Sequence record: MW021758.1
Reading direction: 5' to 3' (one strand)
Length of the DNA: 64,000 nt
Positions 8,228 to 46,753 of this stretch are shown here, piece after piece (positions within the stretch are counted from its first letter, which is position 1; every line of letters starts with the position of its first letter). The position numbers and the translations under genes were made by a program. The notes beneath the pieces are model-generated. The model saw only the letters and a program-made list of their open reading frames with translations. It ran no database searches and had not been told where the DNA came from.

Positions 8228-8671
8228 TTATTTAAAGAAGCAGTCTTTCAGCGATTTGTCTTTTGCGACAGCTTTCAGACCTGCGGTGGATACAGTGAAC
8301 GGTTTGTGGTTAGGGACGATCACTGTGATGGTTTTGGATTTCACAGTTTCCGCCTTCTTCCAGAAGTACGCCCAGTTCGCCTCACCAGCGCGGCTAAGGG
8401 TAGAAACAAACCGAACTTCGTTACCATCGATTTTAGCAACGATAGTGTAACCGTCAGTTTCGCTGTCGTAGCGACGGCCATCTGCAGTATCTACGAACAG
8501 AATGCGCTTATCACCATCGTCCGAACAGGAGAAGTTTACAGAGGAGCCGTTTGCGTTATTGTTAATAACCTCAGTGGTTCCTTGTGCCCAGGAAGAGCCC
8601 CATGTCCCGGCCAGGGTATTGGCGGAGAACAGAGCAGCGGTCAGTGCGATAACAGCGGTGAGTTTCTTCAT
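8228..8671 (-). CDS. Secreted/periplasmic protein
   Basis: Sec signal MKKLTAVIALTAALFSANTLA; two Cys in mature part. Confidence 0.8.
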   Translation of the reverse strand: MKKLTAVIALTAALFSANTLAGTWGSSWAQGTTEVINNNANGSSVNFSCSDDGDKRILFVDTADGRRYDSETDGYTIVAKIDGNEVRFVSTLSRAGEANWAYFWKKAETVKSKTITVIVPNHKPFTVSTAGLKAVAKDKSLKDCFFK

Positions 8672-21812: not shown

Positions 21813-22160
21813 TTACTTAGAGTAAGAATCACGGATGGTTTTGATGTGCGTGCCGCCGTTAGGTACGTTACCGGTACCGTCGACGATAACGAAATCGATT
21901 TCGGTGATTGGGTAGGTGGAAAGCCAGCCGCGCTGGTTACCGTTCACAGCGCCTTTGATAACTGCTTTCACGCGGTTGATGAGCAAAGTCGCATTACCGT
22001 TATGGGCAACTTTGTTGCTGTATTTATCAGCGTAGGAAACGCCGGTAAGTTTCAAGCGAGCTGGAGCGTGGAAGACGATACGGATACCTTCGAGTTCCAT
22101 GACTTGAGCTTCGATATCAGCGAGAGAGAAGGTGGTTTTAGTTTGGTTTGCATTAGACAT
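21813..22160 (-). CDS. Conserved small early protein (LEGIRIV...VDGTG...GGTHIKTIRDSY)
   Basis: Strong codon bias; own promoter (22236) and terminator (21782). Confidence 0.85.
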   Translation of the reverse strand: MSNANQTKTTFSLADIEAQVMELEGIRIVFHAPARLKLTGVSYADKYSNKVAHNGNATLLINRVKAVIKGAVNGNQRGWLSTYPITEIDFVIVDGTGNVPNGGTHIKTIRDSYSK

Positions 22161-22235
22161 GTTAGTCTCCTATTTTGCAGTTTGAATGAATGGTTATTGA
22201 TAACGAAAACATTTATTTGATTCGTTATCAATAGA

Positions 22236-22252
22236 GTGATATAGATGTGAGA
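22236..22252 (-). promoter_or_regulatory. phiKZ-type early promoter
   Basis: Minus strand CACATCTATATCAC. Confidence 0.65.
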
Positions 22253-22253
22253 T

Positions 22254-22559
22254 TTATTTCATTTGGTAACTTTTACGGTAAGACTTATCGAGTTCCTCAC
22301 CGAACCCTTTCAGTACCAGATCCTCACTGAAGAAGCCAGTGCCCCAGAGGATAGGTTTACCCATAGTACGAGCTTTAGTTAACTCATCCCAGAGTTTACG
22401 TCCGTCATCACTACTCCCTACGATGTTACGGAACTTACCGTCGTTAGACAGAAGGAACATACCGTTATCGGAGAAGCCGCCATGAGTAACGGTTTCACCA
22501 AAGGTTTCTTCCATGTCACTTGCAGCAACGATTGCGGTAGGTAAAGACATCATGACCAT
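22254..22559 (-). CDS. Hypothetical protein
   Basis: 101 aa, SD GGAG. Confidence 0.75.
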   Translation of the reverse strand: MVMMSLPTAIVAASDMEETFGETVTHGGFSDNGMFLLSNDGKFRNIVGSSDDGRKLWDELTKARTMGKPILWGTGFFSEDLVLKGFGEELDKSYRKSYQMK

Positions 22560-29487: not shown

Positions 29488-29787
29488 TTAAAGCGTGAAT
29501 ACCTCAAAGTACCAGGCCGTAATAACACAACCCAGAACCGATCCCAACGCACACCAGATAACCGCGTTGGTGACCGAGGTAACGATCTTAGCACGGAGAA
29601 TCCACAGTACTGCCAGATTCTCAATGATAATCGACGCAATGAAAATAAAGACCAGTTGGTTGTAAATGTCTTCAGGTTCAACCAAGAACTGGAAGTACCC
29701 AAAGACAACCACCACGAATTGCACGAGGTAGATTAAGTTCTCTACCGCCCCGCCACGACGCGGGTATTTTTGGTCAGTCTTTAGCAT
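29488..29787 (-). CDS. Membrane protein
   Basis: Three hydrophobic segments. Confidence 0.7.
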   Translation of the reverse strand: MLKTDQKYPRRGGAVENLIYLVQFVVVVFGYFQFLVEPEDIYNQLVFIFIASIIIENLAVLWILRAKIVTSVTNAVIWCALGSVLGCVITAWYFEVFTL

Positions 29788-30103
29788 GGTGAATGCTCCG
29801 TCGTTTAGACTTGTTATCGACTCTCTCGTTCTCCATCGACGTAGTGATCCTGGCTACAACGTAACCGAGGAACGAAGTGAAGGGCAGGAAGCCGAGATGA
29901 CTCCAGTCTTTAGTAATAGGTGCGATAACCACAAAACCAAAGATAGTCATAAGACCAGCTGCGACCAACACCCAAGTCGTCGCTCTAGTCAACTGACCAA
30001 TGACTTCAGAGTGACGAATCCCGATGAACGTGAAGGTTGACACCACGAAGAGAACGAAGTAAAAGCCAGACAGGAAATTCTCAGAACGAATATACTCTAT
30101 CAT
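29774..30103 (-). CDS. Membrane protein
   Basis: Three hydrophobic segments. Confidence 0.75.
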   Translation of the reverse strand: MIEYIRSENFLSGFYFVLFVVSTFTFIGIRHSEVIGQLTRATTWVLVAAGLMTIFGFVVIAPITKDWSHLGFLPFTSFLGYVVARITTSMENERVDNKSKRRSIHHAKD

Positions 30104-30104
30104 T

Positions 30105-30416
30105 TTAAATGTCCATGATGTAGAAAAGGATCGTTAATGAAACGGCGAATGAAATACTTGGGATCATCGACAGGTAATCCAAGTACCCTTTCTCCAGCCA
30201 CGCCTTGAGGCGATTCGTACTACGGAAGATACCGTAGCTATAAAGCATAATGCAAACGACTACTCCGGAGAAACCCAGCGTAGTAATAACCATGAGTGTA
30301 TCTTCACTGAGGTCTTTGTAGATCACTGAGAAAATATAAGTAAGTGCAGCAGCATAAATCGGAACAATCAACGTAAGTAAACGGGGCACAACGAATCTCC
30401 TTATTAGACAAAACAA
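30105..30416 (-). CDS. Membrane protein
   Basis: Three hydrophobic segments. Confidence 0.7.
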   Translation of the reverse strand: MFCLIRRFVVPRLLTLIVPIYAAALTYIFSVIYKDLSEDTLMVITTLGFSGVVVCIMLYSYGIFRSTNRLKAWLEKGYLDYLSMIPSISFAVSLTILFYIMDI

Positions 30417-30677: not shown

Positions 30678-31463
30678 TTACGAATAAATCTCCAGACCCA
30701 GCTGACAGATCGGTGAACGCACGCAGTCATCCTTAACGAACTTGATTACGGGAATGTCAATATCCCGTTCTTCAATACGACGAATCAGATCAAGCAGACC
30801 TGAATCGTTTTTGTTTGGCAGATCGCACTGCTCAATGTCGCCATTGATAATTACAGTGGAGTTCATGCCGATACGCGTAATGAAGAGACGCATCTGGTTG
30901 ACAGTAACGTTCTGAGCTTCGTCCAGAATGACAACCGCATCATCGAATGTACGACCACGCATATAAGCGAAAGGTGCAATCTCGACTTTCTCGATCATCG
31001 GTTTCAGGCAATACTCGAGGAAGCTATTACCCAGGCGTTTACGCAACACGTCGTAAACTGGACGGAAGAACGGGCGGAATTTTTCGGAGATGTCACCGGG
31101 CAAGAAACCCAGATCTTCTTCAGCAGTCAACACAGGACGCGTTACGATAATCCGATCAGTCTCTTTTGCCAGAAGACGATCAGCTGCCCAGGCAGCGCAG
31201 ATATAGGTTTTACCTGCACCAGCAGAGCCCGTAGACACGATGATGTTGCTTAGTTCTAAAGCGTTAAGGTATTGCGCTTGGTTATCGTTACGTGGCTCCA
31301 GAGGGCTTGTATCGCGCTTCTCTTTAGCCATGCCGATAACGTCGTGACCACCGGCAGTTGGGAACTCTACCAGATTATCAATGCCACGATTGTTTTGTCT
31401 TTTTGCTTTACGAACATCGCGACGTTTAACTGTCGCGGCTTTTTGACGACCCATCTGTACCAC
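30678..31463 (-). CDS. phoH: PhoH-like ATPase
   Basis: GSAGAGKT, LGFLPGD, AYMRGRTF, LDEAQN, GDIEQCD. Confidence 0.95.
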   Translation of the reverse strand: MVQMGRQKAATVKRRDVRKAKRQNNRGIDNLVEFPTAGGHDVIGMAKEKRDTSPLEPRNDNQAQYLNALELSNIIVSTGSAGAGKTYICAAWAADRLLAKETDRIIVTRPVLTAEEDLGFLPGDISEKFRPFFRPVYDVLRKRLGNSFLEYCLKPMIEKVEIAPFAYMRGRTFDDAVVILDEAQNVTVNQMRLFITRIGMNSTVIINGDIEQCDLPNKNDSGLLDLIRRIEERDIDIPVIKFVKDDCVRSPICQLGLEIYS

Positions 31464-31581
31464 CTTAGCGGGAGATTAAGAGGTTTCTTAAACGGGGGAG
31501 TTCAGAAACGTTTCGCGTTCATAAAAAATAAAAGAGTAATACGTAAAATAATCCCCTACCCGGATAGGTAGAGGGATCGGT

Positions 31582-31947
31582 TTAGTTCATGACAACCCAA
31601 GTACCTTTAGGAGCGTACTTGCGATAGAATTCTTTCTTGGCACCGTTACGAATCATGGCTACGATGATGTTACCGTTCTCGGTTGTGATCTTGGCCATCA
31701 GCTCGAAGCCTGCATCGCATTGGAAGAAGCTAACGACGTAGACGAGGTTATCTTTATCGATACCGTTGTCATTGTACATCAGCGTACAGCGAGAGGTTTT
31801 ATGGGTTTGCAGGTTTTTGACCCGAGCAGTAGTGTCGCCCACTACGAAATCGTAGTCAGGTGCGTCGCTCATGTGGATCAGACTTGCATTGGCAGAGAAA
31901 GATGCCAGGGACAGTACGGCTACGAATAACGCGATAACGAATTTCAT
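31582..31947 (-). CDS. Secreted two-Cys family protein A
   Basis: Signal peptide ending ANA; C-x22-C. Confidence 0.85.
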   Translation of the reverse strand: MKFVIALFVAVLSLASFSANASLIHMSDAPDYDFVVGDTTARVKNLQTHKTSRCTLMYNDNGIDKDNLVYVVSFFQCDAGFELMAKITTENGNIIVAMIRNGAKKEFYRKYAPKGTWVVMN

Positions 31948-32285
31948 TTGGTTGTTTCCTTATTGAAGTAGTTGCTGTAGTAAACTACATTGGTTGCCTT
32001 GTCACCGATGATAGCTTGCGTGAAAGGTTGGTTGTCGTAGGTCTTGTGGGCGAACATTATGTTGGCGCCACAACTATAGAGTTTCAGTTGGTACTTTCCG
32101 TATTCTGAATCGAGTTCCCGGCTGGTCTTCTCTAACTCACAATACAGGGTCTGGTCGTCGTAATTAACGACTGAGGTTTTATCACCGATCACGGCATTAA
32201 AGTCAGTTCCCTCACTAAGGGTCGTGGTGTCAGCATATGCGCTAAAAGAAATCAAAGCCAGTAATACGATGATAAAACGGTTCAT
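31944..32285 (-). CDS. Secreted two-Cys family protein B
   Basis: Signal peptide ending AYA; C-x22-C. Confidence 0.85.
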   Translation of the reverse strand: MNRFIIVLLALISFSAYADTTTLSEGTDFNAVIGDKTSVVNYDDQTLYCELEKTSRELDSEYGKYQLKLYSCGANIMFAHKTYDNQPFTQAIIGDKATNVVYYSNYFNKETTK

Positions 32286-32303
32286 GTCAAATTGCCTTAT
32301 TGA

Positions 32304-32663
32304 TTAGTCGATGAGTTCAAGAGCAGCCAGCGGCAGTTCTTTGGTGTAGAGAGTATCTTTGTACAGGAAGACGCTAACTTCTACAGTGTGACGTTCTTGG
32401 TTAGTGGTGAAGGTAGCCCACATCTTACCACCACAAAGGTAGTTAGCACCACGGTAAGTTGTACCATCACTTTCTTTACCCGTGATGTTTTCGTTGAAGG
32501 TACAACGAGTAACACCGCCGTGTGCGTCGTTCTTAATTTTCAGCAGGTTACCGCGAAGAGTAATCTCATTGCTGTAGTCATCGTACAGACGATAGTTGTT
32601 AGCATAAGCAGAACCAGCAAAAGTCAGAAGAGCGATAGCGAAGATAGCGTGGATGAGTTTCAT
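32304..32663 (-). CDS. Secreted two-Cys family protein C
   Basis: Signal peptide ending AYA; C-x22-C. Confidence 0.85.
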   Translation of the reverse strand: MKLIHAIFAIALLTFAGSAYANNYRLYDDYSNEITLRGNLLKIKNDAHGGVTRCTFNENITGKESDGTTYRGANYLCGGKMWATFTTNQERHTVEVSVFLYKDTLYTKELPLAALELID

Positions 32664-32733
32664 TTGGTTTTCCTAATTAAGATTGGGACAAGTGAGAATA
32701 AACTAGGGGAACATGTCCCCCTAGTAAAGTTTG

Positions 32734-33186
32734 TTAAGCAATTTTGCACTGAGCCATTTCACAACCGGCATATCTGGAAGTGACATAATGGAGAGCATCA
32801 TTGTGATGTTTCCATGGCGCCGTAAAACCGTACCAGGAAGCCCCAACAGCGATTAACAGGTTACCCAACACTTCGCCTTGGGCATACTCTCCAAAGACGA
32901 TTACGCGAGTTCCCAGTTCAGTTTCCAGGTTCACCAGGCCAGGTAAGTCCATGTAGGTTGTGAAGTCGTATTCGTTGGCCACCACTACGGCATATTTCTG
33001 TTCTTTTATTTCGAAGAATTTGAACGAGTTTTTATTAGCCTTGGCCAATTCAAACGCTTCACCGAATTCGTTCCCAAGAATGCATTTTACAATTGCGGTC
33101 TGGAAAGGTGAATCAGACAGCGCGATGAAAGCATGACCTTCTACGTCTGACTTAACGAATTTCTTGAGGTGTTGGATCGGGTTCAT
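32734..33186 (-). CDS. Hypothetical protein
   Basis: 150 aa, SD AAGGA. Confidence 0.8.
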   Translation of the reverse strand: MNPIQHLKKFVKSDVEGHAFIALSDSPFQTAIVKCILGNEFGEAFELAKANKNSFKFFEIKEQKYAVVVANEYDFTTYMDLPGLVNLETELGTRVIVFGEYAQGEVLGNLLIAVGASWYGFTAPWKHHNDALHYVTSRYAGCEMAQCKIA

Positions 33187-33261
33187 TGTTATTTCCTTTT
33201 TAAGTTTAAAGTGTTTGTATTTAGTTATTAAAGGAGGGGATTTCCCCTCCGTATTTTTTGG

Positions 33262-33582
33262 TTATTTCTTCAGAACCGAATCAATGAAGTCCGGGTAGTC
33301 GTCTTTCTGATCGAAGATAGCGAACGTGATCAGTTCACTTTCCGGCTTGTTACGAATCCAGAGCTGCTTGCCGTTGCTGCATTTCCAGGCAGAGGTAGCA
33401 TCTTTACTGATTACCAAAGCGCACTTGGTGACTTTACCATTCTGCTCGATTTCTGCTAACTTACCATCAATGGTGAATGTAACGCCCTTGTCGGTATGGT
33501 AGACGTTGCTTGCTTCCGCTTTAGGAAGGAAAGGTACAGTTGCAATAAGAACAGTAGTTAGTACGGTAATGATTGTTTTCAT
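33262..33582 (-). CDS. Secreted two-Cys family protein D (short loop)
   Basis: Signal peptide ending AEA; C-x13-C. Confidence 0.8.
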   Translation of the reverse strand: MKTIITVLTTVLIATVPFLPKAEASNVYHTDKGVTFTIDGKLAEIEQNGKVTKCALVISKDATSAWKCSNGKQLWIRNKPESELITFAIFDQKDDYPDFIDSVLKK

Positions 33583-33674
33583 TATTAGATCTCCATTTGT
33601 AAAATTTTAGGTATAAAGTATTGTTATGAGGAGAGCCTAAGAAACTTCCGATTCCCTAAGCTCCCCTTGTTGGT

Positions 33675-34193
33675 TTAACTGATGTTTAACCTCCGCTTTA
33701 TCTTAGGTAGTAACCGAACGACTAGTGATTTAAAGCACATAACCAGAGTTGGACGAGTTAGGTCGTCCAACTCTTTATGCTCGTGTTTCATGACTAAGTC
33801 GATAGTGATCAATCTACGTTCCTTAACCAGCATTATGTAGAATGAAATCAACGCTGAAAGTATTAGTAGAATAAGTGACTGTTTCGGGAAAGTGTAGATG
33901 ATAGTACCTATTGCCAGAAGCTTCACAAAGTTGCTTTGGTAGGCTTTAGAGAATAGGTTATAGAGAAACATGGATTTATCTACGATCTCCTCAGGGGACA
34001 GATCTTTGATGGTCATGGTTAAGTCGTCTAAATGTATTTTATTAAACAACTTTAACTCAGGCTCCTCCCAAAAACGATCTAACGTGATACCTACCACGTA
34101 ACACGCCCTCCCGCCCATGTCCTCCTTCATAGCCTTATCTACTCGGTAGTTGTTGATAACCCCAAGTAAATAGGACTTTACTCGCTTTAACAT
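33675..34193 (-). CDS. AT-rich membrane-associated protein
   Basis: Two hydrophobic segments; first gene after repeat copy 2. Confidence 0.75.
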   Translation of the reverse strand: MLKRVKSYLLGVINNYRVDKAMKEDMGGRACYVVGITLDRFWEEPELKLFNKIHLDDLTMTIKDLSPEEIVDKSMFLYNLFSKAYQSNFVKLLAIGTIIYTFPKQSLILLILSALISFYIMLVKERRLITIDLVMKHEHKELDDLTRPTLVMCFKSLVVRLLPKIKRRLNIS

Positions 34194-34249
34194 AAGCTTT
34201 CCCTTTTGTAATGTTTTGAAAAGAAGGCTTTACTATAGACCTTCGCGCT

Positions 34250-34288
34250 GGTTATATAGACACCAAAAAAATTGGAAATGGATATAAT
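34250..34288 (-). repeat. 39-bp exact repeat copy 2 containing an early promoter
   Basis: Identical to 12377-12415; terminator hairpin 34293-34320 lies just upstream. Confidence 0.9.
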
Positions 34289-34331
34289 AGGACTCTCCTA
34301 GGGAATGATCCCTAGGAGAGCTTCTGTGCGT

Positions 34332-34604
34332 TTATTTGCCAAAGACGTACTTGACATCATGTTTGAAGTTTAAGATCGCTATGGACAGTATACCTTGCGG
34401 CATAAGCACGTATGAGAAGAACCCGTGGGCTTTATTTCCCTTGTAACGATCGTAGAGCCAAATACCAATAAAAGGAGTCACTCGAACAACGATGATCCAC
34501 GGTAGCCAATGTAATGGCGATACCATCAGGGCAACGATGTAAAGAATATACATGATTGCCACCACCCACGAAATGATAATACTCTTACTTGAAGGTTTCA
34601 TCAC
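34332..34604 (-). CDS. Membrane protein
   Basis: Hydrophobic, 90 aa. Confidence 0.75.
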   Translation of the reverse strand: MMKPSSKSIIISWVVAIMYILYIVALMVSPLHWLPWIIVVRVTPFIGIWLYDRYKGNKAHGFFSYVLMPQGILSIAILNFKHDVKYVFGK

Positions 34605-34996
34605 AATAGCACTTCCGTTATATTTCCCAGTTGATTACGGTAGACTCGCACTTTACGTTTAACGCCTTCCTTGGCCTCTGAATAGACCAGTGAACCGCGG
34701 ACGATGAGTAATGTACCCTTACCCTCGGCCTTGGCTTTGCTCAAGAAACTATTCACCTTAGCCGAATCCATGAACGACCGTTTCTGATCTGTACCTTTGC
34801 GTAGCGTGCAGTAGAAGATGGATCGATAGTCGCTCTTTATCTCCACCCAAGGATGTCCTATTGCGCGGAGAATATCCCGAGCGTCAGGTACAGGGTAATA
34901 GCTCACTAGCGTACGTAGATTGACTTCCCTGTCAACCTGTAGCACCTGTATCCCTTCCAGATCAAGGAGAGCTTTACTGGCGTACATCGAGCACAT
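34601..34996 (-). CDS. Hypothetical protein
   Basis: 131 aa. Confidence 0.7.
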   Translation of the reverse strand: MCSMYASKALLDLEGIQVLQVDREVNLRTLVSYYPVPDARDILRAIGHPWVEIKSDYRSIFYCTLRKGTDQKRSFMDSAKVNSFLSKAKAEGKGTLLIVRGSLVYSEAKEGVKRKVRVYRNQLGNITEVLL

Positions 34997-35363
34997 CCTT
35001 AGCGTCCCAAATCCCTTCGTAAATGATCTCTCCTTTCGAATTTCTCCGATAGATCAGATTAAAGGTGTCCGAGTCGTAGTAGTAAGTCAGATGAACGCTG
35101 TTAAAGTACTTGGCAGGAATGATCCAGCAGCTGTACCGCATCGTGTAGTATTTACCTTCGAACTCGTCTACGTTATCAACCCGACTATCGTAAGTACAAT
35201 TAACTCCGGAGTCAAAAGTTTTAACGTGGACTACGTCACCCGTGAATATAGCTTCGAAGATATAACCTTCACGGAACACGACCGGATCTTTTGCGTAGCT
35301 AAACGAGATGCTGAACGAAACCGCCAGCATCAACGCAACGACGCCGATGATCAACTTCTTCAT
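34974..35363 (-). CDS. Secreted two-Cys family protein E
   Basis: Signal peptide ending SYA; C-x22-C. Confidence 0.8.
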   Translation of the reverse strand: MKKLIIGVVALMLAVSFSISFSYAKDPVVFREGYIFEAIFTGDVVHVKTFDSGVNCTYDSRVDNVDEFEGKYYTMRYSCWIIPAKYFNSVHLTYYYDSDTFNLIYRRNSKGEIIYEGIWDAKDVLDVRQ

Positions 35364-35755
35364 CAGAGTACTCCTTTCATTTCCTCCGTCTTAAAGTAGG
35401 CGAGGATATGTGGATGGAGCTCTTTGACCTTATGGGAAAGAGCGGTGAGTTTATCCTCCACTCCAAGACCGGCCATCGCGTTGTAGTTATCATCGCTGAG
35501 TGACACGGTTGAAATGGAAGTTTTCATGGCGCCTGCATGAACGAACTTCATACCGACCTTACGGAAGATATGGTATTCTAGCAGCGGCCCGGTGATTACC
35601 AACAGACCAGAAAAGTCTGGACCTTTACGTTCCATGACGTAAGATTGATCGAAGGAGAGAACCGCAGTAATCTCCCGACCTTCGCCGAGTTGTTCACTCA
35701 GGCGCTTCTTTGTCTTGTCAGCGATCTGTGTTTCTGAGATAACGTATTCGATCAC
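35363..35755 (-). CDS. Hypothetical protein
   Basis: Coupled ORF. Confidence 0.75.
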   Translation of the reverse strand: MIEYVISETQIADKTKKRLSEQLGEGREITAVLSFDQSYVMERKGPDFSGLLVITGPLLEYHIFRKVGMKFVHAGAMKTSISTVSLSDDNYNAMAGLGVEDKLTALSHKVKELHPHILAYFKTEEMKGVL

Positions 35756-36186
35756 AGCGGATACCCCATTGGCAGTTGTAGCGTGACTTTACCGTAAGAT
35801 TCGTAACCACGGCACTTTTTGATGGTAGCGTTGATGTAACTGAAGTTCTTGTCGTCAACATCAATGTAACGCGAGAACTCAACCAACGCGTCGGTGGAAA
35901 CCAGAATAGCCATATCCAGATAGCTGTCGGTTTCCTCTGACTCGTAGAAGTAAATCTTCTTCTCACCTTCTTCGCTTTCTAATTCAGCGGCGTCCTGCTC
36001 AAACATCTTAGCGAGGTAAGAACGTGATTTGGAAGTATCTTCCGGGGGAGTAAAGACAACGATATTGTAACCGTTACCAAACCACCCCTTCATCTCTTCC
36101 AGCGTCACTGAACCATCGGTAGTGATGAAAGACCGAGGACAACCGTTGAGGAAGTTACCGATCATCTCGAACATGGGTGAAAACAT
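35752..36186 (-). CDS. Hypothetical protein
   Basis: Coupled ORF. Confidence 0.75.
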   Translation of the reverse strand: MFSPMFEMIGNFLNGCPRSFITTDGSVTLEEMKGWFGNGYNIVVFTPPEDTSKSRSYLAKMFEQDAAELESEEGEKKIYFYESEETDSYLDMAILVSTDALVEFSRYIDVDDKNFSYINATIKKCRGYESYGKVTLQLPMGYPL

Positions 36187-39771: not shown

Positions 39772-40326
39772 CTAATTACAGCAACAATGCTTCTTTATCT
39801 GGGAGTGACTCAGCCAGATCCGATATTCGACGTCATCCATAGAGACACCCGTACCGCGATGTATCGATCCGTCAAAACCTGAACGAATAAGTCTCGAGAT
39901 GATATCAGGATTATCCAGGAACACATACGCAGGTAAAGCCACTTCCAGAAGAGACGGGGTTCTCCCGATACACTCCAGAACGTAGTTACTACTCAACGCG
40001 CCTTCCCTTACGAACTCCTGATAAAGGTAAGTCCCTTTGACATATTCTTCGTGTTCTAAGATCAGCTTATAAACCTCGACCTTACTCATAACACGAAGGA
40101 GTTGTTTGAACTCGATGCCGGAGTAATCCTTATCGACAATGAAAGGGTTATTGATCTCAATCGTCGCCGAGTAGACCGTAGGGCAATTACCCTTCAGGTC
40201 AGCGTTGTTTGGATTGTGGGCGTAATACTCAGCCGTTGCTTTATTACCAGCAAAGGTTATGGATGGATGAACTGATTCAGTGATAGGTGCTTTACGAACT
40301 AAGCCTCGATATACTTGATACTCCAT
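39772..40326 (-). CDS. ADP-ribosyltransferase-like protein (polyvalent-protein ART type)
   Basis: YRG, SITF, AEYYA, VY...I.INNP, GFDG, EY..W...QIK; start moved to ATG 40326, downstream of promoter 40367. Confidence 0.6.
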   Translation of the reverse strand: MEYQVYRGLVRKAPITESVHPSITFAGNKATAEYYAHNPNNADLKGNCPTVYSATIEINNPFIVDKDYSGIEFKQLLRVMSKVEVYKLILEHEEYVKGTYLYQEFVREGALSSNYVLECIGRTPSLLEVALPAYVFLDNPDIISRLIRSGFDGSIHRGTGVSMDDVEYRIWLSHSQIKKHCCCN

Positions 40327-40366
40327 AAAAGTTTCTCCGCTAAATTGGAATTCTATCCTCAATAAA

Positions 40367-40383
40367 GTAATATAGGCTTCAAA
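40367..40383 (-). promoter_or_regulatory. phiKZ-type early promoter
   Basis: Minus strand TTTGAAGCCTATATTAC, downstream of terminator 40411-40429. Confidence 0.8.
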
Positions 40384-40443
40384 AAAGTTTAGATTCAAAC
40401 AAAAAATAAAGGCGGGGAAAATCCCCGCCGATATGAACAACGA

Positions 40444-42102
40444 TTAGTGATTACCGATAAACGAGTAGCTCACTTTCTCGCCGTCTTTAGTAACGACTTC
40501 CGCGGTCAGCTGCGGGAAGTTGATCGGAGTAATACCTGTTACGCCGACTTTATCGGCCAGCGGTGTGCTGGAAGAGAACGCTTCAATAACGCGACGGGAA
40601 CCGTGCAGCTCATGACGCATGTTCTCAGGGAACAAAGCGCTCTGGCTGTTACGGATATCGTACGCACCTTTAAGCAAGAACACTGGGTCCTTCAGTGTAC
40701 CGTACTCCATCTCTGGGTTAGCCCAGGTTTCAGGCGGAACCGTAATCCCAATGACGTCGACACGTGGAGAATCGATACCGGCATACTCAGGATAGATTGA
40801 CTGGCTATACTGGTAACCGGAAACGGTATTACGGCGGTCTTCGCGATCCCACTTCAGGATAGGGGGTGCATCGGCGAATTCGGCTTTCGTGTAGAACAGG
40901 AAGTTAAACACGCCGCGAGGATTGAACTTGAACTGGATAGAAGTAGCGTTAGGTACGACTTTAGACATGAAGTCCAGAATCGAGATACGGCCACCTTCAA
41001 CTGCCGCCTTCTCAGGTTGCGCATCCTTGGTTTTCACCTGGCTGAATACACCCTGGCGACCTTCTTCCTGCTTAGTTTCACCCGGTACCCAGAACAGGTA
41101 CTGGATGTCTTCCAGCTTAGCAGCGGTACGGTGGAACGAACGATCCCAACCGTTCTTAGACACCAGCTCTTGTGCTTCATCGAGCTCACGTACTGTAGGC
41201 TCTTCAGTCGGCCGCTGATAGTTAACACCGTCAGTTTCACGGATATAACGAGTCAGTGCCAGATCCTCACCGCCTTCCACCAGGGCGTCGAACAACATGC
41301 CCAGGGATGTACCGACTACGTTAGTCTGATCTGGAGTCAGGGTATTAGCCCACAGCCAAACCAGTGCATCACGCTTACGGTTGTCTTTAATCGCATGGTA
41401 CAGCTTAGCGTTATCGACGTACTGCTTGATGCGGTTACGATGGCGGTGATTGCGCAGAGCACCGTAGGTAGCCAGCGCTTTTGCATGAGACAGAATATCC
41501 AGAGACCAACGGTTCAGCGCATTGCGCATTACCAATACTTTCTCAGCCGCCGCATTCTCTTCACCTGCGTAGTTAACTTTGACCGGGTTCAGAGGAATAG
41601 AACCCAGGGTACCGTGGAAGTGCAGCCACCGACCATCGTTAGGTACTGCAGTATCGCTACCGCGGCTAAGTGTACGGTAACCATTAACCGGAGAACGCTC
41701 AACTGCACTCTGGAGCTTCAGAAGCAGGTTAGAGACTTCCACTGGCAGTTCGGCCAACTTACCAGTCTCGGTATTAAAAGCGACAGATGAAACTTCTCCG
41801 CCGGCACCGATGGTAACGAGATTGCCGTTAGCTTCCAACCAACGCTTACAGGTCCGGCAGGTCAGCTCTTTGCGATCCTGTTCACCGAAGGAGTCCAGGT
41901 AAATGTCGTACAGAGATTTGCTCGAGTTAGCGTGCGCCACGTTGACGCGGAAGAGTGGGAAGAACGAGCTTTCGCCGAAACGGAGGTTAGGTGCGCTACT
42001 GTTGAGTTTGATGTTTTCTTTTACTACTTCAACCAACAGGTCGAAGTCGAATTGAGATTTACCAGCTTCGTGTTCAGTACCTGCGTTTTGAATCTGTTCC
42101 AT
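40444..42102 (-). CDS. Large conserved phage protein with CxxC and WxHF motifs
   Basis: 552 aa, strong codon bias; YLDSF...CRTCKRW, WLHFH. Confidence 0.85.
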   Translation of the reverse strand: MEQIQNAGTEHEAGKSQFDFDLLVEVVKENIKLNSSAPNLRFGESSFFPLFRVNVAHANSSKSLYDIYLDSFGEQDRKELTCRTCKRWLEANGNLVTIGAGGEVSSVAFNTETGKLAELPVEVSNLLLKLQSAVERSPVNGYRTLSRGSDTAVPNDGRWLHFHGTLGSIPLNPVKVNYAGEENAAAEKVLVMRNALNRWSLDILSHAKALATYGALRNHRHRNRIKQYVDNAKLYHAIKDNRKRDALVWLWANTLTPDQTNVVGTSLGMLFDALVEGGEDLALTRYIRETDGVNYQRPTEEPTVRELDEAQELVSKNGWDRSFHRTAAKLEDIQYLFWVPGETKQEEGRQGVFSQVKTKDAQPEKAAVEGGRISILDFMSKVVPNATSIQFKFNPRGVFNFLFYTKAEFADAPPILKWDREDRRNTVSGYQYSQSIYPEYAGIDSPRVDVIGITVPPETWANPEMEYGTLKDPVFLLKGAYDIRNSQSALFPENMRHELHGSRRVIEAFSSSTPLADKVGVTGITPINFPQLTAEVVTKDGEKVSYSFIGNH

Positions 42103-42120
42103 TTATTATCTACCTTTCGA

Positions 42121-42210
42121 TTAAGAGTTTACGGGTTGGTTGCCGGTGAAGTCAGAGGGGTCTTCCTGCTGAAATGCTCCACGGTCTTCAGGTTCGTCGA
42201 TCAGTAACAT
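42121..42210 (-). CDS. 29-aa acidic micropeptide (MLLIDEPEDRGAFQQEDPSDFTGNQPVNS)
   Basis: Manual translation; start overlaps the end of 42201-42587. Confidence 0.4.
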   Translation of the reverse strand: MLLIDEPEDRGAFQQEDPSDFTGNQPVNS

Positions 42211-45507: not shown

Positions 45508-46188
45508 TCAACCAATGCGATCAGGGAACCCGTGACCGTTGAGTTCCTGCGCTTCCGCCTCATCCTGTTTGAGGATGAAACGACTAACCGCAACCATCAG
45601 GCTCAGTAGCTCTTTAGCGGTAGTTACCTTGGCGATACCCCACGACTCATCGTCGTTGTCTTCATCGAACTGGAACGTATCCATGCCGACGTAGATGGGA
45701 TCTACAAATGTTTCCAGGAACTCGGCCGATTCAGCGGAGAAACTGAAATCGCTTGCAATGATGTTCCGGCGCCAGATATCCATATTGACAATGAACGGAA
45801 TCGATGCTTTCTCGACATCCGTCAGGTCTTCGAACTGAGAATATCCGGAGATGGCGTAGAAGACTTTGATCGCCGTTTTGGTAGCTTCGCGATAGTTCCC
45901 GGCTGCGTTCTCCATCTTGAACAGATAGTCCATGATGAATTTGTAATGGTCACTGGAAACCAGACGACAATACGTTTTGTAGTTGATACCCAGCAGACGC
46001 TCCCAATAATCAGATGAACGATATTGAGAAATTACGCGTTCCGGGCAATGTCCAGTCCAGCGGAATTCAGCTAACTGAGTAGCCAGCTCTGCGACCTTAC
46101 GTGCATGTTCTACGGAATGGTCACCGAAGTAACGTTCGTAGTTTGCAATTTGAAGTTCTGATCGAATCTTCTTCTCTACAGTTTTCAT
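45508..46188 (-). CDS. Hypothetical protein
   Basis: 226 aa. Confidence 0.8.
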   Translation of the reverse strand: MKTVEKKIRSELQIANYERYFGDHSVEHARKVAELATQLAEFRWTGHCPERVISQYRSSDYWERLLGINYKTYCRLVSSDHYKFIMDYLFKMENAAGNYREATKTAIKVFYAISGYSQFEDLTDVEKASIPFIVNMDIWRRNIIASDFSFSAESAEFLETFVDPIYVGMDTFQFDEDNDDESWGIAKVTTAKELLSLMVAVSRFILKQDEAEAQELNGHGFPDRIG

Positions 46189-46472
46189 TAACGTTCATCC
46201 TCAATGGACTGTTTGCCGTTGCTGTGGTTACTGACTTCACTGATACCAATTCCGGATACGCCGATGTACTCTTTACCGGTACGTTGGTCCTTTATCCGGT
46301 AAACACCACGGCGATTACCGTAAGCCAGCTCATCTTTAAAGATGCCGACCTGAACGACAGCGATACCATCCTTGGTAAACTCGGATGCAGGAACTACTGC
46401 CATTGTCTGAGTAGGGTCAGGGTTACAGGCAGTCAAGAATGCTAACGATAACAGAACTAAAATCTTCTTCAC
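46188..46472 (-). CDS. Lipoprotein
   Basis: Lipobox LTAC after MKK plus hydrophobic core. Confidence 0.85.
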   Translation of the reverse strand: MKKILVLLSLAFLTACNPDPTQTMAVVPASEFTKDGIAVVQVGIFKDELAYGNRRGVYRIKDQRTGKEYIGVSGIGISEVSNHSNGKQSIEDER

Positions 46473-46753
46473 TTTATTTCTCCAGAGTTACGAATCACCT
46501 CGATGAACGGAGGTTGGTTATCTGCTGTGCAGAAAGCTGCATAGACACGTTCGTTCTTTTCGCTAGTCCCGGTGAAGATCTCCCCGCTATAACCTCTTGA
46601 GCAGTCCATGGTACGCTGCATCAAGTTAATGCCTTTGTAACCCATCGATTCGATCTCCGATGCGATCTTGGCGTTTGCAGTGAGGTTTTGGTAATAACCA
46701 ACAGCGGTGACAATGATAACCGGAATTGCGATAAAGAGAACTGACCTTGCCAT
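46469..46753 (-). CDS. Membrane-anchored exported protein with two Cys
   Basis: N-terminal TM; C...C. Confidence 0.75.
   Translation of the reverse strand: MARSVLFIAIPVIIVTAVGYYQNLTANAKIASEIESMGYKGINLMQRTMDCSRGYSGEIFTGTSEKNERVYAAFCTADNQPPFIEVIRNSGEIK

Follow-up and report, generated by a model that had tools for sequence, protein, structure and literature searches.

Neisseria ACP (5MY7) and the MliC and PliC proteins are exported, eight-stranded up-and-down barrels of ~100 residues with one disulfide. That disulfide (Cys38-Cys121 in ACP) is conserved across the lineage, and the inhibitory element of MliC, PliC, and ACP is loop 4, found between strands 4 and 5 (PMC5507604). Periplasmic calycin barrels of the I38 family, again with one conserved disulfide, inhibit proteases, and in Omp19 the disulfide is formed by Cys85 and Cys105, with 19 residues between them (PMC9486555). 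The I38 inhibitors, which include Erwinia Inh, Pseudomonas APRin, Serratia SMPI, and Brucella Omp19, are filled-core barrels that inhibit by docking onto the enzyme. On the phage side, the early T4 protein Spackle, which is periplasmic, blocks the gp5 tail lysozyme (PMC7677548). The locus described here very probably encodes a family of paralogous, exported, disulfide-containing beta-barrels. Its members are predicted to resemble ACP and MliC/PliC in export, length, up-and-down barrel fold, and single disulfide, and to carry a hairpin at the position of loop 4.

The window, a stretch of 64,000 nucleotides, is from Serratia phage vB_SmaM_Yaphecito (MW021758.1; 100% identity), a phiKZ-like Moabitevirus. 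Five of its minus-strand ORFs, singled out in the first-pass annotation, are the annotated CDSs gp252, gp253, gp254, gp256, and gp260, here called members A to E. Four are of the C-x22-C type: A (gp252, 121 aa, 31582..31947), B (gp253, 113 aa, 31944..32285), C (gp254, 119 aa, 32304..32663), and E (gp260, 129 aa, 34974..35363). Member D (gp256, 106 aa, 33262..33582) is of a short-hairpin type, C-x13-C, ending in WKC. A strict pattern search of the window ORFs finds C-x15-Y-x4-[YFW]-x-C in A, B, C, and E and in 0 of the 224 other ORFs of at least 60 aa; the spacing form C-x15-Y-x4-[YF]-x-C holds in the same four members, each of which has two cysteines and no more. The ORFs and the pattern that had been claimed for them, namely, four proteins with a Sec signal and two cysteines 22 residues apart plus a fifth with C-x13-C, are thus confirmed. 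In all five, the strand before the first cysteine ends in a glycine-containing form (VVGD, VIGD, LRGN, IDGK, and FTGD), as had also been noted at first pass for a hydrophobic strand at this place.

All five proteins appear to be made with a cleavable Sec-type signal peptide and are apparently exported, in agreement with the earlier reading. Their N termini have K/R, an 11- to 15-residue hydrophobic core, and a small-x-small site, with candidate cleavage sites ANA, AYA, AYA, AEA, and SYA. In member A, the signal peptide is ~21 aa and the mature domain is ~100 aa, with Cys33 and Cys56 in mature numbering. The five were aligned with 13 relatives, three of them from Ackermannviridae and Stephanstirmvirinae. 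By inspection, the features of Sec export and signal peptidase I cleavage (positive n-region, hydrophobic core, and small residues at -3 and -1) are present in the five and the 13 aligned relatives, and all of them lack both a lipobox Cys and a twin-Arg motif. The mature part has exactly two cysteines in 18/18 members, with a spacing of 22 (n = 15) or 13 (n = 3). Besides the cysteines, only Gly +8, Asp +10, and Tyr +16 are conserved among the C-x22-C members; Asp +10, at the hairpin tip, is often joined by a second Asp, Glu, or Asn.

The tandem arrangement, described at first pass for the whole family, is strict for A, B, and C alone, the stop of B overlapping the start of A. D and E, although within 3.8 kb, are parted from the trio by unrelated genes. 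Member C opens a C-B-A unit that is bordered upstream by a terminator-like stem-loop between gp255 and C (32702..32725, minus strand) and closed by another after A (31553..31574, minus strand); phage Moabite has an annotated terminator at the counterpart of each. Member E sits within a unit spanning an AAA+ ATPase gene to gp258, after which a further terminator-like stem-loop (34292..34321, minus strand) closes it. The neighbor gp255 (150 aa, 32734..33186, minus strand) is a nonmember that lacks a signal peptide and has no Pfam or PHROG match; it shows 80% identity in the more distant phage Totoro and always lies between a D-type gene and the C-x22-C array. The surroundings are a nonstructural block of small genes and nucleotide metabolism genes, and both the annotated endolysin (gp172) and the i-spanin (gp50) are distant from it. 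Small membrane proteins (gp248, gp249, gp257, and gp258) are abundant at the locus. The phage also encodes an M48-type lipoprotein protease.

Identity among the paralogues is 10 to 27%. BLASTP links A with B (1e-6), A with C (1e-3), and B with E (1e-4), and a family HMM searched against the 2,703 stop-to-stop ORFs of the 275-kb genome retrieves these five only, with no further member found elsewhere in the genome. From these comparisons we judge that the likeness of the five is homology rather than chance; the sequence link of D to the others is only suggestive. A profile built without D-type sequences gives D an E value of 0.19 across the genome ORFs, a D-type profile retrieves 0 C-x22-C members, BLASTP leaves D unlinked, and D has no match to the phrog_5474 profile (see below), all of which would suit a D that is unrelated to the other four and is simply another small exported protein with two cysteines. 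We consider this improbable. D is nevertheless the top nonmember match of the D-free profile genome-wide, and hhalign aligns it with the rest at 59% probability (P = 9e-5, 69 columns). It shares with the others the signal peptide, the number of cysteines, the order of strands, and the placement of the cysteines on strands 4 and 5, and its 9-residue difference falls exactly on the hairpin tip. Moreover, its synteny with the array is constant in Totoro and L004, whose D-type orthologues retain C-x13-C, and GenBank annotators matched the same PDB entry with one D-type and one C-x22-C-type protein.

The AF2 model of the mature domain of A (pLDDT 96.3, pTM 0.86) has nine beta strands with the cysteines on strands 4 and 5. 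That of D (pLDDT 92.5) has eight strands, with the cysteines, at mature positions 30 and 44, likewise on strands 4 and 5; agreement between the two models is partly built in because the input alignment for D consisted mostly of the other, C-x22-C type, which also tempers the model as evidence that D belongs. Both models place the start of strand 1 at mature residue 2. Paralogue models from BFVD, which were built independently, match model A with TM scores of 0.75 to 0.86, and together with the confident AF2 models they uphold the proposal of one family on one predicted scaffold. Foldseek finds PDB neighbors among small up-and-down barrels (BVU_3222, ZinT/YodA, fatty acid-binding proteins [FABPs], lipocalins, ACP, and potempin E), with no PDB structure match at an E value of ≤1e-3 for model A or D, and the fold is therefore assigned at the class level only, as a predicted calycin-like, up-and-down beta-barrel of 8 to 9 strands. 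Strands 4 and 5, which are neighbors, are predicted to carry the two cysteines roughly opposite each other; they would form a long hairpin with the conserved tip in the C-x22-C members, a tip that is predicted to be removed in the C-x13-C member. The expectation that no characterized family would be matched holds: 15 members scanned at E values up to 10 give no Pfam match of any kind, and the PDB sequence search, also at E values up to 10, gives none.

Comparison with other phages places the window proteins in phrog_5474 (PHROGs v4, unknown function) as a distant branch. The phrog_5474 profile matches B (1.3e-7), E (9e-5), A (1.2e-4), and C (7.5e-3) over 75 to 100 residues, values that are weaker than they look since the matches take in the signal peptide. 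The link is supported because C-x22-C, G-[IV]-D, and the Tyr are common to Salmonella phage Maynard gp90, which itself matches the profile at 4e-52, and Escherichia phage anhysbys gp53. Like the window members, the phrog_5474 proteins (Maynard gp90 with its Ackermannviridae orthologues and those of Stephanstirmvirinae, such as anhysbys gp53) have a signal peptide, a mature domain of ~100 residues, two cysteines with a spacing of 22, a Gly-[Ile/Val]-Asp motif from +8 to +10, and Tyr +16; identity to the window members over the mature domain is 11 to 18%. More than 200 genomes of Ackermannviridae and Stephanstirmvirinae carry the family. These are ordinary myophages of 145 to 160 kb with one or two copies each, whereas Moabitevirus has five or six; contrary to the first-pass focus on jumbo phages, the family is not specific to them. 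Most carrier phages infect E. coli, Salmonella, or Klebsiella. In all, hundreds of large phages of enterobacteria carry the family, and any function given to it so far is only putative.

What these proteins do can be weighed against several known barrels. Two paralogues are already labeled "putative lysozyme inhibitor" in GenBank, from an HHpred match to ACP 5MY7, and D itself is entered as "putative lysosome [sic] inhibitor"; the system is to that extent not undescribed, as it had been called, although the label is weakly founded. In support of the label, the HHpred search of the Moabite annotators matches CPT_Moabite_271 and CPT_Moabite_268 to 5MY7 over 81 residues, and 5MY7 is the best-TM neighbor of model D (TMq 0.59 and TMt 0.53 over 88 columns, with a Foldseek probability of 0.99). 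Size, predicted periplasmic location, and single disulfide are alike as well, and loop 4 is functional in the ACP/MliC/PliC lineage. However, the Foldseek E value for D and 5MY7 is 0.15, which is not significant, and the superposition, at an rmsd of 4.6 Å, shows weak fold likeness; ACP, MliC, and PliC entries number 0 in the Foldseek top 50 of model A. The disulfide joins strands 1 and 8 in ACP/MliC/PliC versus strands 4 and 5 in the window models, and sequence searches of Pfam and the PDB give nothing even at E values up to 10. Neither SxSGAxY nor YxxxTKG is found in any of the five, as the first-pass annotation had stated for MliC, but ACP itself also lacks SxSGAxY (loop 4) and YxxxTKG (strand 6) (PMC5507604), so their absence excludes MliC/PliC only. 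On balance, true membership in the ACP/MliC-PliC lineage, with inhibition of lysozyme-type muramidases in the periplasm, seems quite unlikely. The E-value-ranked top Foldseek PDB neighbors (ZinT/YodA, FABPs, lipocalins, and LolA) would instead suggest small ligand- or metal-binding calycins that capture a molecule or ion in the periplasm, and the acidic conserved hairpin tip could bind a cation. Yet these matches are weak, with TMq values mostly of 0.3 to 0.5. The best neighbor of model A, the uncharacterized Bacteroides vulgatus BVU_3222 (PDB 3FYF), reaches a TMq of 0.60 and ZinT-like proteins reach 0.46 to 0.51; 3FYF, ZinT/YodA, FABPs, and lipocalins are up-and-down beta proteins too, but with 130 to 190 residues, and the E values are not significant. 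The 82- to 105-residue domains of the family have the size of filled-core inhibitor barrels, and the filled core of an Omp19-type barrel is too crowded for a ligand (PMC9486555). As there is also no conserved His/Cys metal site and five to six divergent copies are easier to explain by several protein targets than by a single ligand, we regard ligand capture as rather improbable.

Relatives of the I38 inhibitors (Inh, APRin, SMPI, and Omp19), blocking secreted or periplasmic metalloproteases such as Serratia serralysin, would fit in that these are periplasmic eight-stranded calycin barrels of ~100 residues whose disulfide falls in the first barrel half. The number of residues between the cysteines is similar, at 22 or 13 here and 19 in Omp19; serralysin and its inhibitor SMPI are both made by the host genus, and the M48-type lipoprotein protease is encoded by the phage itself. 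This origin is nonetheless very unlikely, as the Inh family gives no Pfam match in 15 members at E values up to 10 and I38 structures number 0 in the Foldseek top 50 of models A and D. Strand 1 starts at mature residue 2, which leaves no free N-terminal trunk, the I38 inhibitory element of ~10 residues, and the carrier phages mostly grow on E. coli, Salmonella, or Klebsiella; most host genera are not Serratia. We hold equally little hope for periplasmic factors of lysis timing or envelope remodeling, for example, antiholin-like sensors of the T4 RI kind, in place of inhibitors of foreign enzymes. RI is small and periplasmic and carries a cleavable signal peptide (PMC8385771), and small membrane proteins are frequent at the locus (gp248, gp249, gp257, and gp258), but no holin was identified near the locus, endolysin gp172 and i-spanin gp50 are far off, and a single holin partner would not call for five to six divergent copies. 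No link to RI was seen either, with no PDB sequence match at E values up to 10 and nothing labeled RI in the Foldseek top 50.

The best overall explanation, to which we give about an even chance, is a family of soluble periplasmic binders or inhibitors, lysozyme inhibition being one possibility only. The roles put forward at first pass, as inhibitors of lysins or ejection proteins, receptor blockers, or inhibitors of envelope enzymes, are likewise hypothetical. That the proteins bind or inhibit other proteins at all is, in our assessment, evenly balanced, and a peptidoglycan hydrolase as the target seems unlikely. After Sec export, a soluble domain of 82 to 105 residues would be released into the periplasm of the Serratia host, where the Dsb system of the cell may form the disulfide and so brace the hairpin. 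The proteins could then bind or inhibit periplasmic or envelope proteins stoichiometrically. Contact would be made by the braced strand-4/5 hairpin, topologically "loop 4," in parallel with the role of loop 4 in MliC/PliC/ACP. The paralogue identity of 10 to 27% suggests that each copy may have a target of its own. The most likely biological role would be to protect or control the envelope of the infected cell through the long jumbo-phage cycle, for example, by blocking cell wall hydrolases from outside in a Spackle-like manner. Like the family members as predicted, Spackle (gp61.3) is phage encoded, small, and periplasmic, with a signal peptide, and comes from a virulent myophage. Spackle is helical, no sequence or structural relation between it and the family was found, and the analogy is one of role only. 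Alternatively, the tip motif (G, D, and Y) may serve structure alone, as a turn that contains an aromatic-glycine pair, instead of being a contact site, and an acidic tip does not obviously suit the acidic active site of lysozymes.

The suggestion of hypervariable surfaces is not borne out. Close orthologues have pN/pS values of 0.03 to 0.10 (0.04 for both B and E) and are under purifying selection, strong enough that they show no sign of a current arms race; these values and the conserved locus indicate that the genes are real and maintained. The divergence of the paralogues is old, and the turnover between Yaphecito and Totoro concerns which paralogues occupy the middle of the array. The PhoH-to-AAA+ ATPase locus is kept in Totoro and two metagenome contigs with 5 to 6 members each. 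Totoro has six copies at the matching locus, with the orthologues of A and E 67.5% and 50% identical, respectively, and the middle copies replaced. In Moabite, C and B are separated by an additional paralogue, CPT_Moabite_271 (L002:4306-4662), which shares their signature.

Serratia phage vB_SmaM_Yaphecito (MW021758.1; 275,554 bp; genus Moabitevirus; record position = 186000 + window position) codes for a tubulin-like protein and for multisubunit RNA polymerases of both the virion and the non-virion type, and is therefore a phiKZ-like jumbo phage. The first-pass annotation had proposed a family of five secreted disulfide proteins here, and the five ORFs are indeed all present and all annotated as coding sequences on the minus strand: A (gp252, 31582-31947), B (gp253, 31944-32285), C (gp254, 32304-32663), D (gp256, 33262-33582), and E (gp260, 34974-35363). 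Each protein has exactly two Cys residues and a Sec-type signal, in which N-terminal Lys/Arg is followed by a hydrophobic core and then by a small-x-small cleavage motif; inspection of the sequences revealed neither a lipobox nor a twin-arginine motif in A to E. The cysteines of A, B, C, and E are spaced C-x22-C within the signature C-x15-Y-x4-[YFW]-x-C, which is found in no other window ORF of at least 60 amino acids, and D is the short C-x13-C member that it was said to be.

Because BLASTP links A with B, A with C, and B with E, and because a family HMM retrieves A to E and no others from the 2703 ORFs of the complete genome, the likeness, as judged from sequence, is homology and not chance. 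When either Tyr or Phe was allowed at +16 (counted from the first Cys), one chance match appeared in a non-coding-frame ORF of the genome, and specificity is therefore limited to the strict pattern. Pfam, NCBIfam, and PADLOC gave no meaningful match for the members or their neighbor genes, and a PDB sequence search with three family profiles returned signal-peptide or chance matches alone. The product of gp60 ("fatty acid binding protein") was considered as a sixth member and rejected, as it has neither a signal peptide nor Cys and is matched by no family profile at E <=1. Another exported two-Cys protein of the window, a 147-amino-acid "putative adhesin" at 8228-8671 belonging to phrog_3429 (E 2e-46), is unrelated to the family.

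AlphaFold2 modeling of mature A from a 15-sequence alignment yielded a very confident all-beta structure of nine strands (pLDDT 96.3, pTM 0.86), and mature D, from an alignment mostly of the C-x22-C type, gave a confident structure of eight strands (pLDDT 92.5). Independently built paralogue models in BFVD superpose on model A with TM of 0.75 to 0.86, as do small proteins of five further phages with 0.60 to 0.73 (Klebsiella phage Menlow, Escherichia phages Mt1B1_P17 and nieznany, Erwinia phage Frozen, and Pseudomonas phage EL). In both models, strand 4 bears one cysteine and the consecutive strand 5 the other, each at an equal offset from the connecting turn, a predicted placement that is compatible with a cross-strand disulfide. 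Strands 4 and 5 of model A are long (residues 29-42 and 48-56), with the conserved Gly, Asp, and Tyr clustering at the turn, and it is exactly at this turn that nine residues are missing from D. An unlikely alternative is that D is unrelated to A, B, C, and E; its signal peptide, its two Cys, and their equivalent placement argue for kinship. The models directly predict a hairpin tip that is conserved in the family and absent in one subtype. The hairpin is a clear candidate contact element, with natural variants that have it and lack it. We are highly confident of the structural description, namely, a paralogous signal-peptide family with two invariant Cys on adjacent strands of a beta-barrel-like domain.

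A profile of the five mature domains was run against 1.84 billion representative proteins with a threshold of E 1e-3. The full scan gave 16 matches at E <=1e-3, five of which are repetitive proteins taken as false, the remainder being the family itself. Beyond the queries there are seven proteins of similar size, with a signal peptide in all six that are full length, C-x22-C spacing in 7/7, and aromatic residues at both +16 (in five cases Tyr) and +21; the contigs that carry them are fragments of related phages and have the same gene order. Word-index protein searches returned Moabitevirus-like proteins alone. A locus search, which covered the A-type subtype alone, found phage 2050HW (IMG/VR) as its sole match and no bacterial genome, which argues against a cellular origin of the A type.

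The family is not restricted to jumbo phages but occurs also in Ackermannviridae and Stephanstirmvirinae. A, B, C, and E weakly match the profile of phrog_5474, a PHROGs family of unknown function of which Salmonella phage Maynard gp90 is a typical member (E 4e-52). Both Maynard gp90 and Escherichia phage anhysbys gp53 have a signal peptide, the exact signature, and Gly-[Ile/Val]-Asp at +8 to +10. Searches with mature domains (E <=1e-5) located the Ackermannviridae type in 99 records and that of Stephanstirmvirinae in 126, at one place per record and always annotated "hypothetical"; phapecoctaviruses carry a second, divergent copy at another genomic place. Among 18 aligned members, the mature domain has exactly two Cys in every case, spaced by 22 residues in 15 and by 13 in three, and the 15 long members conserve Gly at +8 (11/15), Asp at +10 (13/15), Tyr at +16 (14/15), and an aromatic residue at +21 (14/15). 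Ackermannviridae, Stephanstirmvirinae, and Moabitevirus all carry the family, which has multiplied in the last of these alone. A metagenomic member, P0013, is a lone gene on the opposite strand next to lambda-type head genes and by tblastn reaches 179 phage records. On its lambda-like contig (L011:8001-9692) it adjoins terminase genes in a moron-like placement, and the gene after it has a weak Pfam match to PF07007 (listed as LprI).

The region from 31000 to 36000 is 100% identical to the Yaphecito record and 97 to 99% identical to that of Moabite, 2050HW, Kodama, BUCT660, Haymo, and Pectobacterium phage ParM-25. In the relative Totoro (PhoH 67% identical), the locus from PhoH to the AAA+ ATPase is conserved and has six family members. 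Here the orthologues of the A, D, and E types share 67.5%, 36%, and 50% identity with those of the window, and gp255, the non-member gene flanking D, shares 80%. The Totoro genes between A and gp255 are different paralogues with at most 29% identity to B or C, and Moabite has one additional paralogue between C and B; therefore, copy number and composition in the middle of the array vary by lineage. Their surfaces had been called hypervariable, which is the wrong word for these proteins, as within the Yaphecito-Moabite group all are under purifying selection with pN/pS of 0.03 to 0.10, similar to neighbor genes. The sole length change of a family member seen among close relatives is in Kodama, whose E orthologue is 12 nt (four codons) shorter, in frame.

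The genes lie in a block of minus-strand genes that are small and of unknown function or serve nucleotide metabolism, with thymidine kinase, PhoH, AAA+ ATPase, and DHFR annotated. A, B, and C are the sole strict tandem and form one unit between stem-loops at 32702-32725 and 31553-31574, D is flanked by a stem-loop on each side, and E lies inside a unit running from the AAA+ ATPase gene to the stem-loop at 34292-34321. Throughout 31455-34331, nearly every intergenic gap, including both sides of D, has a perfect stem-loop that is rich in G+C, with an A+T-rich stretch after it; these could be terminators, combined terminator-promoters, or RNA-stability elements. Sigma-70-like sites in the locus were not above the level of shuffled sequence, and an 8-mer search of the intergenic regions returned T-runs alone. 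Three small predicted membrane proteins, gp248, gp249, and gp258 (29774-30416 and 34332-34604), flank or interrupt the family and have no Pfam or PHROG match; together with gp257 (33675-34193), a 172-amino-acid membrane-type protein, they mark the locus as an envelope-directed gene cluster. Neither Moabite nor BUCT660 has a detectable nucleotide match to gp257, although an equally long gene occupies the same place in both; in ParM-25 the match is restricted to a 123-nt stretch, and Totoro has no gene there. This looks like allele replacement within a locus that is otherwise 97 to 99% identical.

Two Moabite paralogues, CPT_Moabite_271 and _268, are recorded as "putative lysozyme inhibitor" from the annotators' HHpred matches to the inhibitor ACP (5MY7), and Yaphecito gp256 is labeled "lysosome inhibitor." Of this link, we reproduced a weak fold likeness alone. 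Neither model A nor model D has a PDB structural match at E <=1e-3. The neighbors of model A are BVU_3222 (3FYF, TMq 0.60), ZinT/YodA, and fatty-acid-binding proteins, and those of model D are Neisseria ACP (5MY7, TMq 0.59, TMt 0.53, E 0.15), 5HAL, lipocalins, potempin E, and Tsi1. As these are, without exception, small beta-barrels of the up-and-down type or related beta structures, the fold is calycin-like at the level of class and points to no specific family. In the lysozyme inhibitors ACP, MliC, and PliC, a disulfide conserved in all links strand 1 to strand 8, MliC/PliC have the motifs SxSGAxY and YxxxTKG, and inhibition is exerted by loop 4, which connects strands 4 and 5 (PMC5507604). 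Whereas that loop is the topological site of the braced, conserved hairpin of the phage family, the predicted disulfide of the latter joins strands 4 and 5, both motifs are absent, and the family has no Pfam or PDB sequence match even at E 10; true ACP/MliC/PliC membership is therefore not supported. A label based on weak fold likeness, which could propagate to other records, is hereby corrected. I38-like protease inhibition is a rival reading. MEROPS I38 (Inh, APRin, Serratia SMPI, and Omp19) is a second family of the same kind, made up of periplasmic calycin barrels that have a filled core and a single conserved disulfide, its Cys ~20 residues apart (PMC9486555); in contrast, A to E lack the N-terminal trunk of I38, and neither Pfam nor Foldseek gave a link. 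Ligand or metal binding is another rival, in line with the fatty-acid-binding proteins and lipocalins among the neighbors, a likeness that holds for the fold class. The closest general kind would be small periplasmic calycin-type binders.

To our knowledge, exported phage proteins are scarce, and those that are understood (Spackle, RI, Llp, and Cor) each showed a mode of infected-cell shielding or timing. Lysis timing is a rival role for the family. The role that we favor is that the envelope of the infected cell would be protected or controlled, by analogy with T4 Spackle, an early periplasmic protein that blocks the gp5 tail lysozyme (PMC7677548). In such a scheme, the proteins would be exported by Sec and cleaved by signal peptidase I, the disulfide would form in the periplasm, and the hairpin with its adjoining sheet would bind periplasmic or envelope proteins stoichiometrically, each paralogue having one target. 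We put the chances that the family is a protein binder or inhibitor at about even. Peptidoglycan hydrolases are an unlikely target. Against the scheme, the tip motif may be purely structural, the acidic tip is not obviously suited to lysozyme clefts, and there is no sign of a current arms race. More speculatively, and improbably on present evidence, the array could be a phage-borne "periplasmic immunity set" in which each paralogue deals with its own class of enzyme that attacks the envelope from outside, for example a tail-tip hydrolase of a competing phage or a cell-wall-degrading effector of a neighboring bacterium, and neutralizes it by means of a disulfide-braced hairpin without counterpart in the known inhibitor families; the ancestral one-target form would then be represented by the single copies of Ackermannviridae and Stephanstirmvirinae.

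What was already known amounts to a PHROG of unknown function and two paralogues with a weakly founded label. New are the recognition that five genes (elsewhere six) form one family, for which a signature is defined and a fold predicted, the modeled strand-4/5 disulfide brace as a signature unlike that of ACP/MliC, a natural tip-less subtype, and the span of three phage lineages. Hundreds of phages that have been sequenced, widely used isolates of Kuttervirus and Phapecoctavirus among them, carry this uncharacterized family, and its multiplication is limited to one phiKZ-like jumbo phage lineage. If the proteins are inhibitors, the few periplasmic enzyme inhibitors on record would be joined by a new scaffold, and it would become apparent what a jumbo phage must guard against in the periplasm.

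Elsewhere in the genome, gp89 (MW021758.1 record positions 99833-101206) is annotated as "putative M48 family lipoprotein protease," a further sign of phage action on the host envelope. Two overlapping 94-amino-acid minus-strand genes at 46188-46753, the upstream one with an N-terminal membrane helix and the downstream one with a lipoprotein signal (LTAC), have the layout of a spanin pair, but the record annotates an i-spanin at another place (gp50). At 21813-22559, a "putative toxin" (gp229) adjoins a "putative antitoxin" (gp230) in this virulent jumbo phage. Finally, three adjacent coding sequences at 39772-42210, gp269 to gp271, of which gp269 and the 29-amino-acid gp271 are both annotated as PLxRFG-domain proteins, may be a single gene that was annotated piecewise or is interrupted.
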